Positions 43,126 through 52,474 of a stretch of DNA of 64,000 nt are shown piece after piece. The notes under the pieces are model-generated. The model saw nothing but the letters and a program-made list of their open reading frames with translations. It did no database searches and had not been told where the DNA came from. Numbering within the stretch: position 1 is the first letter of the stretch; every line of letters begins with the position of its first letter. This stretch comes from Mantamonas sphyraenae STR306 (taxonomy: Eukaryota; Protista; CRuMs), in NCBI GenBank assembly GCA_026936335.1, contig JAPMXV010000011.1:226544-290543 (forward strand). The letters run 5' to 3'. Made by a program: the position numbers and the translations under genes.

Positions 43126-43418
43126 GGGTCGTGTGCGGTTGTGGTGACGGGGCGCGGGCAGAGGCAAGCGACGACGAATGGTGAGTGAGGAACGATGAGA
43201 GCGAGGAGGGTGTCGCACAGAGGAGAAAAGGATGGAAGGGAGAGAGAGCGGCCACTGACAGGTGGGGAGTGTGCGTTGCGTGTGTGCAGGGCTGTGGGAC
43301 GAGCAAGACGGGCAGAAATCCGACAGCCGGTCTGGCTGGCGAAGGAGGGGGTCAAGGGGCAGGAGGCGTGCATGGAAGTGGAGCATCATCATCGAGCAGC
43401 AGCAGTGGAAAGGCAGAA

Positions 43419-44533
43419 ATGGGAGTGGCAACGGAACTGGATGTGGAGGTGGGGGACTGGCTTGGTTTGCTGCGAGAGCCGTTGGTGCTGGGGCGGATCT
43501 TGAGGCACATGAGCACAGAGGAGCAGCAGCAGTTTTCACACTGCAGCAAGGAAGTGCGCAAATTGGTCCTGGTGGAGGTGAGTGGAGAGAGAGAGATGGA
43601 TGTGTGGGGACACAGGGAGGACGAGTAGAGAAGGAGCTGACGCGCGCGAAACGCTTTCCAAAGTTGGCAAGAGCCTACCAAGAACGGATCCGGGTGCTGA
43701 GCAAGCGGCGAAGCAGGGAGAAGCACCAGGTGGACTTTGAGACGGCAGTGAAGATGAAAACAGAGATGGGGCAGTTGTACATGCAATGCAGCAGCTTCGA
43801 CGAGGCCGGAGTGGGCACGGTGCTGGCGCTTGACGTGGCGCCCAACAGGGGCTTTGCGTTGCTGGCTCTGATGCTCCTGCATGTGTGTGGAAGGCTGTCG
43901 GAACGGGAACTGGCACAGATTGGCATGTCGAGCGAAGAGGACGGAGTGTTGGACGACGACGGATACCTGGAGGAAAAGTGGGAGCAGCTGAGCAGCAGCG
44001 TGCTGCCTATTGAGGTGATTCAAGGGATGAGGCAACTCTATGGGCAGGTGGAAAGCGGGACAATGGATGGAGTCACAGCAGGGCTGCTGGACAGACTGTG
44101 CACGTGCGAAGCGTTTGCGTCGGCTTGGGTGGACGAAAACACAGTGATTGCAGGTGCAGAAGGGGCGCTGGAAGGACTGGGGGTAGGCTATACAATGGTG
44201 GACGGAGTGCCGGTGCCTGTGGAGGGGGGAGGGAAAGGAGCAGCCGGGAAGGCCAAAGAGGCGAATCCGCAAGCGTACGACCACAAGGTGGCGTATGCCA
44301 AGGAGCACCTGGATTTCTTCCACGCTGTGTACAAATTCGAAGCGAGTGGGGCGGGGCAGCAGATTCTGAGCAAGCTAAAGGTGATTGAACTGCGCAAACT
44401 GGCCGACGCTGTGGAAAAGGTGTTGCGGGAAGAATATCCGCAAGAGTGCAGCACACATCCGCATGATGTGGAGATTGATGGGGAGAAGCTTGTGTTTGTG
44501 GTGAGTGTGGATGAGGAGAGCGGGCATGGATGA
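43419..44533 (+). CDS. Hypothetical protein with possible N-terminal F-box-like segment, exons 43419-43577, 43664-44533
   Basis: A GTGAGT..GCTGAC..AAG phase-0 intron joins LLREPLVLGRILRHMS...CSKEVR to a protein-like ORF. Confidence 0.6.
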
Positions 44534-44583
44534 AGGATGAATGGGAGTGGGAGTGGGGGGGGGAATGGACGGGATGATGGGGA

Positions 44584-44596
44584 CTGGGATTTTTAT
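44584..44596. repeat. 13-bp direct repeat, left copy (candidate target-site duplication)
   Basis: CTGGGATTTTTAT, identical to 52462-52474. Confidence 0.8.
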
Positions 44597-44845
44597 TCCT
44601 GTTTGCAAAACAGCGCGCGTTCAAGCGATGATCACGTCACACCCACGGCATCATGTCCACCCCCAATTGCAACAATGTTCGTTCACCCACAGTGTGTTCT
44701 TGTGTGAGTAGCTCGTCTTGCGCGTGGGAGGGGGTTGCAAACTCACATACGAATGTTTCCGGACAAATCTGCTTAGTGCCGGATTGAATTGTGTGACGAG
44801 TCCCTTGACACACACGAATGCGCAGGGACTCCGTCACACACACGC
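44597..44845 (-). ncRNA. Putative Fanzor omegaRNA scaffold
   Basis: Non-coding segment between the Fanzor stop (44846) and the element end. Stems: 44790-44805/44824-44840 (16 bp, one bulge), 44758-44762/44779-44783, 44703-44709/44741-44747, 44599-44604/44608-44613. The position matches known TnpB/Fanzor loci. Confidence 0.65.
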
Positions 44846-47800
44846 TCACGTACATGGCTGCAAGTGGGCCGGCCGTGCGCCGATGAGCGAATAGAGCAGA
44901 CCAACAGTGCCAATCTGCAAGGCCCCATTCACATCACGATCAACACAACGTCGACGGTATTCGGTGGTTGGGTTGATTGCGCTGATGAGCGACAAGCTGG
45001 CGCCAATGGCTGTGGTTCGGGTTCCCAGTGAGCGAAACTGGTCGCACTTACAGCGTTTGAGGCGGCCGTGCGGGCTGTTGGAGCCCAAGTCTGGCGCATA
45101 GGTCGTTTCGGCACCACACACATGGTGAGTCTTGGAGGTGTTGTACTCATTCACCCGCACCACCATTGAGGATCTGGAGATGAACTCGATGGCTGATTTG
45201 AACCCACCCGAGGATCCAGTCCATGTCACACTGCCCACAATGTACAATACTGTTCGTGCAGCTTGTTCTTTGCGAGGTTTTGCCACGTTTGCCATCATCT
45301 GCTGCGTCTGTGCGTGCTTGCCTGTGCGATGCAACTTGGCCACGGCTCCAGTCGGGTCTGCACCGCCCGCAGCATGACGCTCTACACTGTGTGCATGGTC
45401 GTCAATCTTTCTTGCGTGGTGTGGGAGCGTTGGCACTTTCCACCAGCGGCCAATCGTTTCGGAGCCATGTTGGACGTCGGTTGCCAGTTCGACACACACA
45501 ACGTTGGTGGCGTACGAGCCAGGGTCGATGAAGCACAGGCGCAGCCTGCGCAGAAGAGCGAGTGTCTCGCTGTACTGTGGTGGGGAAGTCGGATGGCGCA
45601 GCCGTACAGAGTGCAGGTCACCTCGGCACAGCTCACCGTCCCTGCTCAATCCAATGCCACTCTCCACAATCGAGTTGATGAGTCGCTCGCCTAGCGTGTG
45701 CTGAACTCGTCTTCTTCCAAACAGGCGACAAAGCCGGCAAATAGCGATCAGTTTGTCCCGTGGTTCTTCACACTGCAGCGACTTCAGGAGCGGTTGTGCG
45801 TATGCCAGAGAGCGATGGTGAGGCGATAGAAGCTCCAGCAAAGAGAAAGTGGCCTCCTGCCGTTGGGTTCCACGCGGCCACGTGGTGCGCAGTGTGGCTA
45901 GCGTGGACGGCACGTTCCAGGTTTGGCATTTGAGGATCTTGCCACACACGACGAGGGTCCCTGTCATGCGAGCCAGTGTGCGCAGAGACAGGTTGGCGAC
46001 GCGAGGGCATGCCAACATTGCCAGTGCCGGTGAGCTCGCCTGCCGTGCTTTTTGAAGTCCTTCGTCGGTGATTTCGTCGCCCAACAGAGTGTGCTTCGCG
46101 TACGCTTGCAGGTGACTCTGAACGCGTACGTGCTCCTCCGTATCCCCGCCCCATGCCCAGTCGTGCACTTGTGTGTTGGCATACTCAATTTCGTCGCCAC
46201 GATCGATGTGCAGGCCGGGAGGAAGTTGCAGCAAGCCAATGCTGAACATCCCCTTCAACGTGGTGGGAGTGAGACAAACATCGGGTGACAGGCTGCGGGG
46301 CTTTTGAGGCACGCCCACACCACGTCCAGACACATGTGCTGCAGCAAGCGCGACCCAATCCGCGGATCTGGTTTCACCGCTCTCTCGGCCGAAAAAGACG
46401 TCTGCGTTGCACATCCCAGCCGCATCCAAGGCTTCAAGCAGGTCGTCGGTTGCCTCCTTGTACACTGTGTCGTCGTCACCGTGTTTCTTCGGTCCAAAGG
46501 CGACGTTGAGGGCGGCGAGGCGGGCAGCAACGGCGACGGGGCCCTCGTCCAGTTTCTCGGCGATCGCTTCCACTGCTGTGTCACGTGGTAGTGCGTCGAA
46601 GTGGGGCTGCAGCTTCGCCAGAGTGTTGGCCAGCTGGAACCTCGTCAGCATTCCCTTCCACTCTCCGTGCAATTTCTGCGAGCTTTCTTGCAGAGCATAA
46701 TATGTTGCCGTCCACAGCGTCTCCCACATGTTTCGATTGTTGCGAGCTGGCAGGAGGTCCAGATCATCCAGATCCAACAGTACCGTAGCGTGATCATGCT
46801 CAGACAGGTCTGCCACGAGGTCGATGTGGTTGAAGACCAGCTCGTCCTCAAACCAATTGGAGCTTCGATCCCCCTTCAGCACAAGGAAACGTTGCTGGTC
46901 TTCTGCATCGCGTACAAGCTTCCTCAGAGACTGCAGCCACGACACAAGCTGTTTCTGCGAGTGAAAGAAGGCAGTATCGGCCGGCGAAGAGCCAGTGAAC
47001 CTGCTGTTGCTGCTGCTGCTGCTGCTGGCAACAACGTCATATCCGTCTTCCTCCATCTCGTCCTCTTCGTCGTCCTCTTCGTCGTCCTCTTCGTAGTCCT
47101 CGCTGTAGCAGCTGCCGGAGTCAGAGGAGTCTGATTCGGAAAAATCATCACCGCACACCCCCCCGCCCTCATGCTCTGTGGCGACACGCTGCCGCTTGTC
47201 CATCGACGACGTAGTCTGTATGCTCCGACGGCGCTTCTTGTTGTCTTGAAGCGTCTCTTCCTCGTCGCTCCACTCGTGGTCCTGTTGATCAGCAGCATCA
47301 ACATGTCCGCGAGGCCCACCAGCACTGCTGTGTGAGCGGAGGCTCATGCCGTGGTGTTCTTCCTGGGATAGAGCTCCAATGCTGTCGATCGCGCACACCA
47401 AGGTCGCGGTGGCAGCTCGTTCGAGACCGGCAACGGCCTGGCCGACTTGGAACATGGCATGTTCGCTGGCTTTGTCACCTGCGTGTGGACCAGCGAGTGT
47501 GACAGTGTGCTTGGGGTTCTTTGTAGACACACCGTACGCAGTCGTCTTGGCGGTCGGTCCCAGCGTGTGCTCCACAAGCTCCTTGGTGGCCCGCTCCACA
47601 TCGTGCTGCGCCAGCGGCGTGATTTCAGCCAACGTAGCTGTCACCTTGGTGGCCTTCTTCTCCAGTTTCTCCTCGTAGTCCCGGGCGTGCTTGTCACGTT
47701 GCTGCTTTTCTTTGCTCTGGGCCTCCCTCTCCTTCTCCGTTGAGACATACTTGCGCCGTACCAGCGTGTCGTGCAACGACTCTGCCACTGAGCATGCCAC

Positions 47801-50204
47801 CCCATGGACAAAGCAGTCTGCACCCAGCCTGACAAAGGTACACAGGTAGAGCGAACCCACATCCGCCTGGTCTGTGTGCACCTCGACACGCACGTGCTCC
47901 TTCACAGCGTGCAGCAGCGATGAGCTCTCGATCTCGCGCAACACCAAGGCGGCAGTGCGGACATCGTCAGGGTGCCCAAGCAGTACTTGGGACGCGCTGT
48001 CCTGTGCATCTTCCGTGCCCGTGCCAAATACCATCGTGTCCGCTTGGCTGATGAACGGCGGGTCAGGCGGGCGCGCATCTTGAACAATTTGCGCATCTTC
48101 GACACTGGATGTGGCGCTGGAGCTGGCGCTGTCCTCTGTTTCCATAGCATCGGTGTGGTCCTTGCTGTCGTTCTCGGCGTCTGTCAACGCCTGGTACAGG
48201 GGATGGCCGATGGCCGCTTCGAGATCGTGGATCTTGACGTTGATTTTCTCTCGTGCCTTGCCATTGCCTTTGCCTTTGCCTTTGCCCTTGCTCTTGCCTT
48301 TGCCCTTGCTCTTGCTCTTGCCTTTGCCCTTGCTCTTGCTCTTGCCTTTGCCCTTGCTCTTGTTCTTTCTCTTGCGTTTTCGGCCCGGTTGCGTAAGCGT
48401 GATTGTTTCGATCACCTCACCGCTTGCCAGGCCTCCATCATGGAACAGTACGTGTGCTCCCGCCTCGACCTCGTCGTTGCGAACGATGTATGCTTGCGCC
48501 GTGCCGTCGACGGCCACGTACAGCGTGTACCCGACAGTCGCCGTGGACACCCTGGTACACAGCTGCTCCAGCTCCTCCAGCCCGATGGTGGCGCCAAAGC
48601 ACACGCGGTCATGGATCAGACTCTCCAGCGTCCTGCTGGACATGCCCATACTGTTCACGGCCGTCCACAATCCATCCAAGTCTTCGGCGAGCGAGCTCTG
48701 CGACGGATTGCTCTCAGGATCGCCAATCTCCTCCAAACCGCCATTGTCGCTGCTCTCATTCTCCAAACCGATCTGCTGGCGCGCCAGCTCATAACGAGTA
48801 CCGTAAAGCTGCCAGTCTTCATCAGATGCGTCAGCCACGTGCTCGTCAAGCCAGGTGAACGTTCCGGGGTTCCGTGTGGAGGCCAAGCGGACGAAAAATG
48901 CCTTCGGGTTGTTGCGACACGCTTGCCCGGAGAGATCCATGTCGCTCGAGACTGCCGCGTGCGCAAGCGGCAGTGGAAGCCGCAGATAGGTGGTGGATAT
49001 GTCGCCACGGCCAGCGAGAACGGCAGCGACGGCGGTTGTGTGCCGCAACGCGGGTTCCACAGATGTCACGATCGCGTTCACAGGGTCGACGATGTGCAGT
49101 GTGCTCTCCACAAGCGGAGCACAGAAGTAAAAGTCAGAGTCTTGGGCAATCACGACGAACGCATCCACCTGCTGCTTGTCAATACTCGTGGCAAAGGTGT
49201 CCGTGATCGTTGCATCAGCACTCGTACCTTTGCGTCCGATCACCGTGACCCGCTCGTCCTTGGCGAAGTGTCTGGCCACAACCCCGTGAAGCACGGTGTA
49301 TGCCTCGTCCTTGGATCTGGGGCGCTGTTGGGAAGTGTGAGTCAGTGCCATGCAGCTGGTGAACTCGTCGGATGCACGCCGTGAGAGGGTTTTTTTTGCG
49401 TGCCCCTCCAGAAAACCAACCTCCTTGGCCCCGGCGAGTGTGGCGTTTACCATGGACTTGACGTTGTACAGCAGATGTGACGCTTGTTTTGGGTCCGCAC
49501 TATTGAACAGCGTGCCGTGACGATCAATGTGTAGCGAGAAGACGCAGCGTTCCACGATGGAGCCGATGGTATCCACAAGCGCACGCAGACGGAGGGCCAG
49601 CGACTCGCACTTTTGCTCAAAGTCAGTGTCACTCGCTTGCTTGCCTGTACTGAACAGTCTGTACTTGTAGTCTGTGTTGTGTACCGAGTCAGGAGGGACG
49701 AGAGGGCAAGGATTTTGCGGGCATCCAGCATGTGTGTCAATCACAAAGGCCGCGGTAGTAGCTTACAGAGATAACCAAGGTCAACAGCCACATGCAAAGG
49801 ACACTCGTCGTGCTTCTGGTTGGCAGCAGTCTGTACGTAAACCTGCCACACATGCTCCACACACATGGCAACGCGTTCGTCCACGTCCAAATCCTCGGCT
49901 TCTTCCTGTGCCTTCCAGACACTGCTCTGTCGCATGACGTGATTGCGCAGGGGGACCTTGCCTTGGATGTGCCTCTTGCGTAGGTAACTTCGCTCCCATT
50001 CCTCTCCGATGTCGGCTTTCTCGGCGTTAAGGATGGTGACGTCGACCACAGCAAAGACACCATTGAAAATGTGCGCGGTGTCGTCCAGCAGAGTGGCACT
50101 GGCCACATGTGGCTTGTGGAGCAAAGAGCGAACAGCAGACTGGCCCATGTCCCTTTGTGCCTTGCTCAGAGGAGAGCCAGCAGTGATGCCGCCGCTGCTG
50201 CCGC

Positions 50205-50236
<32 letters not shown>

Positions 50237-50238
50237 AT
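44846..50238 (-). CDS. PIN (XPG/FEN-like)-Fanzor fusion, ~1765 aa, exons 50238-49767, 49671-44846
   Basis: RuvC-I CFIDPG (D codon 45524-45526), shifted RuvC-II VNEYNTSK (E 45146-45148), Zn-ribbon-like HHVC..CKC, RuvC-III DRDVNGALQI (D 44933-44935), terminal RP motif. N-terminal PIN-like motifs VAVDLGYLY, HID, SAD, AQDSDF, LAGRGD. The intron GTAAGC..CCTGAC..CAG at 49766-49672 joins the two ORFs in frame. Alternative start at 50148. Confidence 0.85.
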
Positions 50239-51116
50239 TGTTCTTGACCAGCGTGCGCAAACAGACATAGCCGAGCACATGCACGAGGTGTATGTTGCGC
50301 AGATACGAGCATCTGACTGCAACGCAACGTCCACCCGGGTGTGCCCCTGGTGCCTTTTTTCCAGAGTCTCACGCATGCCAATTTCGTGGCGCAATCAGCC
50401 GATGTTCTCCTCACCAGCTACGCATGTGCCACTGTGAAGACAGGTTGGCGATGCTGGACATAGCCACACTTTCCTGAGGTGCTGCGGAGGATGTGCGCCA
50501 AAGGCTGCATGGGCTGCACCCATTCCTCACACTCGCCCACTCGTCCAGGGTCACAACGAACGACTTGCCTGAAACAGCAAGGCACAACGCCTGCCGTAGT
50601 CTGTGTCCCATCATGTGCTTCCAATGTGTCGACGAATTGGCCAAGCAAGGGTCGCCTTGCTCTGTGCCCATGCAATCACGTGCAAGATGACGCTGCACGA
50701 CAACCGGCTCGGTGAATCCATGTCGTATGCGCAGTAGGTGCACGCCGAATGGGCCACGGAGGCTACAACCTGGCCTAGGACGCCCGACGCTTGGCCGTTT
50801 GGGCACTGCCTCAACCTACTCCCCAGACCCAACACACTGAAGAAGCGAAAATCCTTGACGACCTCACCATCGCGTCTGTTCATTCGTAACACTCCTTTCA
50901 AGTGCACATCTCTGCACGTGTTCCAACGCCCCACCCCCCGCCGTTCTCAACCGAAGTACAACGAATCTCGAATCTCAATCTCACTTTGCACGCGGAGTTT
51001 GCTGGCGGCGGAGCACCCCTCTGCAATCATGGGCCCACTAAGACCTCACTCAAGGTGAGTACGGATTTTTCTAATACCCCATGCAGAGTGTGCTGCAGCC
51101 AGTCCACCGAAGATCA

Positions 51117-52138
51117 TCACATCCTGTACCCACAGTTGCGTCCCCACGCTCGCACATCGCGATTCGTAGTCATTCGCAGACAGTGCTCGATGGCAAATGG
51201 TGTGCACACGTCGACTCGTGCGTAATGCCGCCTGAGCATGGCCTTGAGCTTGCTGAACATAAATTCGATTGGATTCAAATGTGGGCTGTACGCGGGCAAG
51301 AACTCGACACGCACGCCAAACAATGCACACAGTGTAAGTACTTCACTTCCCTTGTGGATGCTACAGTTGTCCATCACCAGCATGCGCATGCCCTGTGCTT
51401 GCATCCGTGGAAGCAGTTTGAAGCGCAGAAAGTGCACAAAGTCACGACGTGAGTACGATCCGGTGAGCATGTCGAATGCCACAATGCCATTTCGAGCCCT
51501 TGCATTGATAGCTGCCAACAGAGAGATCCGTGACTGGCGTGCTTGCAAGGCGTGGACAACGGCGTCACAGCCGGCCCGTGCTCGGCCGTACCGTCTCCAG
51601 CAAGTGCGATTCTGCACTGCGCTCTCGTCCAGAAACACAATGTTGGCCATTGTCATGTCGATGTCGTGCCGCATCAGTCGCTCAAACTCCTGGCGTCGAC
51701 GACGCACGTGTGCAAGGCTGCGCTCGCGTGGGACAACTGCACACTGCTTGCGCGTCCATTTCATGCGCTTGAGGGCACGAAAGATGGTTGAAAGAGATGC
51801 ATGCACATGGCGCTGTTGGAACAGACGGCTCTGCAGCTCATCAAGGAACAGAGTGCAGTCCACGCGAAGCTCATCCTTCAGGAATGCATCATCAGCTGCT
51901 GCAAGCAGTCTTGGACGCCCTCCAGATCTGGGCAAGGGTGCCACGTGGTTCAGCCGTTGCAGCTGCTTGACATACTTGCGTACCGTGCTGGCTGCAACTT
52001 TCCAAATTCGAGCCGTTGCTGCAGCGGAGCGTCCGCTCTGAATGTGTCGTCCACCATACGTTGACGCAGTTCCAATGGAAGGGGATGACCAGGTGTGAAC
52101 ACCCCACCAAGTGAATTCACTTTGGTTTGAACCGGCAT
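51117..52138 (-). pseudogene. Tc1/IS630-family DD34E transposase with paired-like DNA-binding domain; 2-nt frameshift at ~52044-52045
   Basis: NIVFLDESA, LVMDNCSIHK, FLPAYSPHLNPIE, with 34 residues between the second D and E. The N-terminal 31 codons from ATG 52138 lie in a different frame from the rest. Confidence 0.9.
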
Positions 52139-52242
52139 TGTCGTTGTGCAATCGTTTGATTTTCTCGTCGAGCGGAGACGTGTGGAAACACCAAGAACAA
52201 AGAAAAGCATGGGTGTGTGGACAGTGAACGTAGCTTGTTATA

Positions 52243-52274
52243 TCATGGTGTCCCGTGTTTATGTCATGGTGTCC
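52243..52274. repeat. Two direct copies of TCATGGTGTCC (52243-52253, 52264-52274), candidate transposase-binding sites
   Basis: Exact 11-bp repeat with a 21-bp period, ~105 bp upstream of the transposase ATG. Confidence 0.55.
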
Positions 52275-52461
52275 ATCACCGTCCAGGGTGGACCACCTCT
52301 ACGCGTGCCAAATCGGAGAGAGCAAAGCTGATTGAAGAAGATATCGCCATGTGGAACATGCACAGTATGGAATACGACCAAAAATTGCATTTGAGCTGGA
52401 ATTAAACGAGCTGGGGTGCATACCAGGGCGTTGCACGAAAGAGTCGCTCAATTGAAAACGC

Positions 52462-52474
52462 CTGGGATTTTTAT
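52462..52474. repeat. 13-bp direct repeat, right copy (overlaps the CSL4 stop codon)
   Basis: CTGGGATTTTTAT, identical to 44584-44596. Confidence 0.8.

Follow-up and report, generated by a model that had tools for sequence, protein, structure and literature searches.

A Fanzor1-type nuclease with N-terminal FEN/XPG-like PIN motifs as cargo of a Tc1/IS630-type element in Mantamonas sphyraenae

Fanzors are relatives of CRISPR-Cas12 and are viewed as compact single-nuclease enzymes. A gene of Mantamonas sphyraenae STR306 raises the question of whether a Fanzor can carry a second nuclease in the same polypeptide and, if so, what that nuclease would do. The stretch of DNA analysed, here called the window, consisted of 64,000 nucleotides (assembly GCA_026936335.1, contig JAPMXV010000011.1, 226,544–290,543 of the forward strand). 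All positions below are those of the window, and features lie on the minus strand unless marked (+). The gene at 44846–50238 had been proposed, from a sequence-only reading, to encode an intron-containing Fanzor fused to an XPG/FEN-like PIN nuclease. The Fanzor1 with a probable second nuclease is real and was not found described before. In the freely available text of the main Fanzor papers, a 2026 review and the wider literature, supplements and subscription papers lying outside that scope, no natural PIN/FEN-Fanzor fusion was reported and no paper combining Fanzor and XPG was found.

Gene model and the two nuclease regions

The open reading frame (ORF) of 1632 amino acids (aa) at 44846–49744, the 217-aa ORF upstream of it and all of the motifs quoted in the sequence-only reading were present as described. 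The proposed 95-nt intron 1 at 49672–49766 could also be recognised, with a GTAAGC donor, a CCTGAC branch site and a CAG acceptor, and it joined both frames in phase 1. The same phase-1 GT donor, at a constant codon position behind the first PIN strand and following a D-x-G-x-x motif, was found in 14 family loci, some of whose copies are just about 30–35% identical; because the donor position is kept at such divergence, intron 1 is not a chance feature. The earlier estimate of a product of about 1765 aa is correct with intron 1 alone. A second intron at 49325–49420 (96 nt, GTTGGT donor, CTGAC branch site, CAG acceptor, phase 0) had been read as coding because it is in frame and free of stop codons, and removal of both gives a protein of about 1733 aa. 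Paralogues showed a frame change or a stop at the position of intron 2, between GT...CAG ends, and no further supported intron candidate was found in the long exon. From comparison among the copies, both introns are predicted to be spliced. The PIN-RuvC fusion itself does not hinge on splicing: one stop-free exon contains the RuvC domain together with four of the six PIN motifs.

Exon 1 (49767–50238) encodes a poly-Ser N-terminus and the Asp of the first PIN strand (VAVD, codon at 49782), and exon 2 (49421–49671) the PIN helices and the Asp of the second strand (HID, codon at 49525). The first part of exon 3 (48690–49324) holds the PIN internal region and a degenerate H3TH-like motif, with Asp codons at 49216 (SAD), 49141 and 49135 (DSD) and 49003 (GRGD). 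It is followed by a linker or middle region (46970–48689) containing a conserved QPG block, a Lys/Gly repeat, an alpha/beta block and an acidic tract, in which the first WED/REC elements may lie. The KGKGKSKS repeat, likened to a nuclear localisation signal (NLS), and the acidic tract that had been pointed out for the linker were both located here, the NLS-like Lys/Gly repeat (48233–48375) being longer in the window copy through expansion. The Fanzor1-type nuclease, with REC/WED, RuvC and zinc finger, occupies 44846–46969.

The identification of the C-terminus as a Fanzor is well supported by its D/G/E/D motifs and by structural alignment to solved Fanzor1s. The motifs of the C-terminal ~700 aa were invariant in 16 paralogues and correspond in the window copy to the RuvC-I Asp (codon at 45526), the RuvC-II Gly (45235), the shifted Glu (45148) and the RuvC-III Asp (44935). 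The rearrangement of RuvC-II that had been recognised earlier, with Gly at the canonical Glu site and Glu downstream, was seen in 16/16 rows; Gly or Pro at the canonical Glu and an alternative Glu downstream are features of Fanzors (PMC10530073). The Gly-to-Glu spacing was 29 residues in the window copy, compared to the ~45 quoted for Fanzors (PMC10530073). The Fanzor/TnpB signature D-X(125,275)-[TS][TS]-XX-zinc finger-X(5,50)-RD (PMC3627910) could be read with 128 residues from D to TS and 35 from the last Cys to RD, the zinc ligands being H/C3 in the window copy (HHVC..CKC) and C4 in several paralogues. The model of the C-terminal part aligned over its whole length to SpuFz1/PpFz1 only, and an extended REC/WED/RuvC fold like that of SpuFz1 was obtained over ~400 aligned residues, at an identity to solved Fanzors of just 10–12%. 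Outside Mantamonas the best match had an E value of 1.6e-15, meaning that no relative is close, and no homologue of the RuvC region was found among long proteins in word-index protein searches. Known Fanzors, at ~600 aa (PMC10530073), are much shorter than the present protein, as had been remarked.

The N-terminal part carries motifs of the FEN/XPG-type PIN domain, an assignment supported by several independent lines, each of them modest, with fold evidence that is consistent but weak. FEN-like PIN nucleases have four invariant Asp residues, after S1, S2 and S4 and before H5 (PMC5499597). The corresponding Asp residues of VAVD, HID and DSD were present in the window copy and kept in the paralogues, with Glu in place of the S2 residue in one subfamily. 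The EAD motif appears as SAD, as stated earlier, its second acidic residue (A-D) being invariant and the first being Ser. An H3TH-like region with a putative catalytic Asp, which had been expected together with the PIN domain, was found as GRGD; it aligns to GCDD..IRGIG of P0120, a relative described below, and its glycine loop is degenerate. The Pfam family 5_3_exonuc_N matched one paralogue with E=8.5e-7 in a single ORF that has TNB in the same frame. Atlas features also supported PIN, the nearest clusters being FAM120A, Asteroid and MKT1, the last labelled an inactive endonuclease. Foldseek placed FEN/T5/Exo1 within the top 15 (E about 1e-3) for a paralogue model; the folded sequence was a paralogue whose natural ORF runs through both introns, which lowered the quality of the model. 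Searches with the spliced model took its exons one at a time. No significant Pfam or PDB sequence match was obtained for the PIN part of the window copy, and no homologue of the PIN alignment in word-index protein searches. The PIN region may have structure-specific 5' nuclease activity.

The element, its copies and its relatives

The Fanzor1-PIN fusion is the cargo of a DNA transposon of Tc1/IS630 type, of which the locus represents one copy. The C2 and C57 copies were 95–98% identical to it over 44596–52464, with unrelated flanks. The left terminal inverted repeat (TIR), CAGGCGTTTTCAATTGAGCG, spans 20 bp at 52445–52464, and a related motif opens nine other elements and a second transposase family. 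The right TIR (44596–44615, 20 bp) is degenerate and forms a sharp 3' boundary common to five other copies. The 20-bp imperfect TIR was defined from 10 left ends together with the right ends, which are a degenerate inverse of the left motif mostly with TA next to them; the window copy matches at 11/20 positions. A DD34E transposase of Tc1/IS630 type with a paired-like N-terminus lies at 51117–52138 (Pfam DDE_3, E=1e-25), and its D-34-E spacing could be read from the sequence. Its N-terminal part (52138–52030) may resemble the Pax paired domain. The transposase of the window copy is frameshifted by a 1-nt deletion near 52046, while an intact 340-aa frame occurs in the C2 and C44a copies; of 15 elements searched upstream, 10 lack a transposase and retain the fusion. 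A Helitron or retro-element vehicle was excluded by the Tc1-type TIRs and the retained introns.

The 3' non-coding region (44596–44845), a candidate omegaRNA scaffold, was 94–99% conserved in three copies and ended sharply at the TIR. Its first hairpin (44786–44845) was strong (z=-5.7), the whole region was unremarkable (z=-1.0), and no Rfam match to it was found. The right flank (44576–44595) is the presumed guide, a position taken from known Fanzor biology (PMC10432273, PMC13565253); its first 9–12 nt are repeated at the left junction.

A search with the RuvC region covered 25,061,354 bases in 78 contigs, in agreement with the published genome of 25.06 Mb and 78 contigs (PMC10492846), and gave 27 matches at 98% down to 24% identity, 25 of which sit in open frames of 1175–2252 aa. 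The loci were read in smaller stretches, some of the 27 just in part. In a quick tree built without reference Fanzors, seven subfamilies were distinguished, all with PIN motifs, and the M. sphyraenae copies formed a single group with one Mantamonas plastica transcriptome protein. Across close and distant pairs, the ratio of nonsynonymous to synonymous substitution rates (dN/dS) was 0.06–0.48 for PIN exons 2–3 and 0.11–0.30 for RuvC; for exon 1 it was 0.26 in one pair and 0.84, with few changes, in another. Purifying selection acts on both the PIN and RuvC domains, and five PIN Asp positions were kept among copies with saturated synonymous divergence. In five of the six close pairs the dS of RuvC was several-fold below that of PIN, so the exchange or copying of 3' parts is more recent than that of 5' parts. 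Given the 27 matches and the selection on both domains, a fusion by chance or confined to one locus was rejected, as were allelic copies, because the flanks differ. The fusion family is multi-copy, old and recently mobile.

The pairing of PIN and Fanzor is not unique to this genome because P0120, a protein of 1224 aa encoded by a single intronless ORF on a 4-kb AT-rich contig of Logan run SRR7244345 (L052, 300–3974), carries both. All PIN motifs, including a textbook H3TH (GCDD..IRGIG), precede its Fanzor part. Comparison of its PIN with the family by hhalign gave E=2e-4 and 9.9 bits, the highest of 500 shuffles reaching 2.0; word-index protein searches returned no homologue of this PIN, and scans of viral and metagenome contigs no relative of the protein. 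In the quick tree, its RuvC fell outside the Mantamonas group and beside PIN-less proteins, a position that suggests a second fusion event or losses. In the EukProt data of M. plastica, P0001/P0151 represent an expressed Fanzor that belongs to this clade and whose zinc finger seems degenerate. P0151, the longer transcript isoform, starts with EAD, DTD and GKTD and ends in Fanzor; these PIN-like motifs were seen by alignment, are not statistically significant and serve as a lead only.

Junction classes and the possible role of the PIN domain

Both ends could be defined for 13 elements, and their target-site duplications (TSDs) were TA/TA in four, TT/TT in two, long in six and ambiguous in one. 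The window copy belongs to the long class, having a 9-nt duplication that starts with TA in place of a TA TSD. The left copy of this duplication, TAAAAATCC, lies at 52465–52473, and it grows to a 13-nt direct repeat by 3 nt of microhomology (CAG, the element's first bases) and the preceding A. In the six long cases, the first 6–12 nt of the right flank, the presumed start of the guide, are repeated at the left junction, with lengths of 9 (+3 microhomology) in the window copy, 6 in C17, 8 in C2, 9 in C63, 10 in C44a and 12 in C54; C2, C54 and C63 are 5'-truncated. By a rough estimate, nine matching nt at one fixed junction would arise by chance with a probability of ~4e-6, and the shortest match with one of ~2e-4. 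We know of no Tc1 transposase that produces 6–12-nt duplications of this sort. Comparable junctions occur in Chlamydomonas Fanzor1 elements (PMC3627910), for which Fanzor cutting was suggested (PMC10288648), and the long flank duplications might be such as the repair of a Fanzor cut could leave. Excision-footprint dinucleotides ahead of the long duplications were considered and rejected, the pattern being inconsistent.

To our knowledge, how Fanzors aid eukaryotic transposons has so far had no in vivo demonstration. We give about an even chance to a course in which the Fanzor cuts the empty site by its guide, the tethered PIN trims the ends and the element is copied back from a donor. An omegaRNA would arise from the element's 3' end, with the right flank as guide, and a transposase acting in cis or trans would excise the element. 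The Fanzor would then cut the empty allele or sister chromatid within the guide-matching flank, and the PIN domain, in a role of resection for homing, would trim the cut ends by 5' resection or flap removal and thereby steer repair to copying the element from the intact donor. Copying would begin at the right end and be completed through microhomology-based joining to a left end not yet fully trimmed, and such one-sided copying would leave a 6–12-nt flank duplication and at times a 5' truncation. The wider proposition, that this is a natural two-nuclease RNA-guided effector, that eukaryotic Fanzor1 gained the fusion on two or more occasions and that guided homing left its genomic trace in the flank duplications, is put forward more tentatively, at somewhat short of even chances.

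Several points weigh against these proposals. The omegaRNA, the guided cleavage, the activity of the PIN domain and the link to the duplications are all matters that we infer. The PIN fold has weak support, with a Foldseek E of about 1e-3 and a TM of 0.2–0.3, and VIA-align wide puts unrelated folds first for this region. At the first acidic position before H4, which by motif order corresponds to FEN1 E158, the window copy, several subfamilies and P0120 have Ser, Pro or Thr; the C34b/C70, C29/C63/C10 and C33/C4 subfamilies have Glu. Characterised Fanzor1 cuts 14–21 nt from its target-adjacent motif, more than the 6–12 nt of the duplications, and trimming must therefore be assumed. Engineered exonuclease fusions, T5 exonuclease included, lowered MmeFz2 editing (PMC12923547).

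Three other roles for the PIN domain were weighed. Firstly, it could act on RNA, freeing the omegaRNA 5' end from the element mRNA or degrading R-loop RNA. The omegaRNA has to be released from the mRNA 3' end, RNA is the substrate of the FEN-like relatives XRN and herpesvirus vhs, and FAM120A, Asteroid and MKT1 are the nearest Atlas clusters. RNases are also found within the FEN-like group (PMC5499597). However, most Fanzors do without a PIN domain and the H3TH-like dsDNA-binding motif is retained, and we consider such a role unlikely.

An equally low standing is given to a PIN domain that serves flap or gap processing driven by the transposase, or the trimming of 3' tails as is reported for Asteroid/ASTE1, without acting on the Fanzor cut and with the fusion being a convenient carriage. 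The elements are Tc1/IS630-like and an aberrant insertion could yield long duplications, yet the fusion is old, selected in all subfamilies and kept in the 10 of 15 elements without a transposase upstream. Mariner elements are also known whose cargo comprises a Fanzor and a separate endonuclease (PMC3627910).

The loss of one acidic position in many copies, the degenerate H3TH, arch basic residues that are not clearly identified and the inactive label of the nearby MKT1 cluster would suit a weak or catalytically dead PIN that provides the Fanzor with a module for structure-specific DNA binding or scaffolding. Such a module seems as improbable as the preceding two roles, given the five Asp positions kept despite saturated synonymous divergence and the canonical EAD/EAE in three subfamilies. 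That the N-terminus is not a PIN nuclease or that the PIN and Fanzor parts come as separate proteins, as the lack of a Pfam or PDB sequence match for the N-terminus of the window copy and the splicing deduced by comparison would allow, is very improbable in view of the four PIN motifs sharing a stop-free exon with RuvC, the paralogue ORF with 5_3_exonuc_N and TNB in one frame, the intronless P0120 with GCDD..IRGIG and the conserved positions of both introns.

Under the preferred reading of a guided cut with tethered trimming, a second, end-processing nuclease kept through deep divergence points to control of the repair outcome as part of the system. The presence of two junction classes in one genome, 2-bp TSDs and long flank duplications, makes the homing model testable from sequence. 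A natural cut-and-trim effector could inform the biasing of editing to homology-directed repair, and is informative because engineered exonuclease fusions to a Fanzor2 gave no help (PMC12923547).

Related systems and neighbouring features

The protein resembles Fanzor1 (SpuFz1, PpFz1, GtFz1; PMC10432273, PMC11423790) in its rearranged RuvC (D, G for E, shifted E, RD), zinc finger, introns and conserved non-coding 3' end up to the element boundary, and differs from it by the added N-terminal FEN/XPG-like PIN and the ~570-aa middle region. Tc1/mariner Fanzor1 elements (PGv-1, PUl-1 to 6; PMC3627910) share the DDE transposase upstream on the same strand, the TIRs, the TA TSDs and non-autonomous Fanzor-only relatives, whereas TT besides TA duplications and 6–12-nt duplications in about half of the insertions are found here. 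PGv-1 also has a second nuclease, but as a separate gene of another fold (GIY-YIG) and not a fused FEN-like domain. Chlamydomonas CRe-1/2/3 (PMC3627910, PMC10288648) show a similarly precise 3' end, variable target duplications, 5' truncations and suspected Fanzor cleavage; unlike the present elements they are Helitron2-type with 7–19-bp TSDs, and a PIN fusion was not reported for them. FEN-like PIN nucleases (FEN1, XPG/Rad2, Exo1, GEN1, T5 FEN, Asteroid; PMC5499597) match in how the Asp motifs are ordered and spaced after S1, S2 and S4, in an insertion between S2 and H3, in an H3TH-like G-x-D and in alignment of the model over 200–230 residues. The protein of the window copy departs from them in having Ser in place of the first acidic residue before H4, a degenerate glycine loop in the H3TH and an RNA-guided nuclease as the fusion partner of the domain.

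Two C44 copies (L038/L039; G000:C44) had transposase coding sequence with 95–96% DNA identity to 51031–52161 of the window and did not share the flanking element sequence. The Fanzor of the C44 elements is just 37% identical to that of the window copy, which indicates that the transposase module was recently swapped between subfamilies. A second transposase family (L041–L044; G000:C11, C43, C59, C46) is 48% identical and has a related left TIR, together with at least 1.5 kb of additional shared DNA that has no match to Fanzor elements. The most divergent copies (L048 and L051; G000:C34 and C70) have long tandem peptide repeats within the Fanzor region, and their C-terminal tails are of low complexity; in L048 there is repeated DNA upstream as well. 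In L009 (G000:C68), the ~170-nt 3' region is tandemly duplicated and the frame is broken (433-aa open frame). In the window, the element is inserted right after the stop codon (52471–52473, inside the left duplication) of the exosome gene CSL4, whose original 3' untranslated region has been displaced to 7.9 kb away. At the other side, a 423-aa ORF without a Pfam match (43262–44533, +) converges on the right end of the element, 63 bp off.

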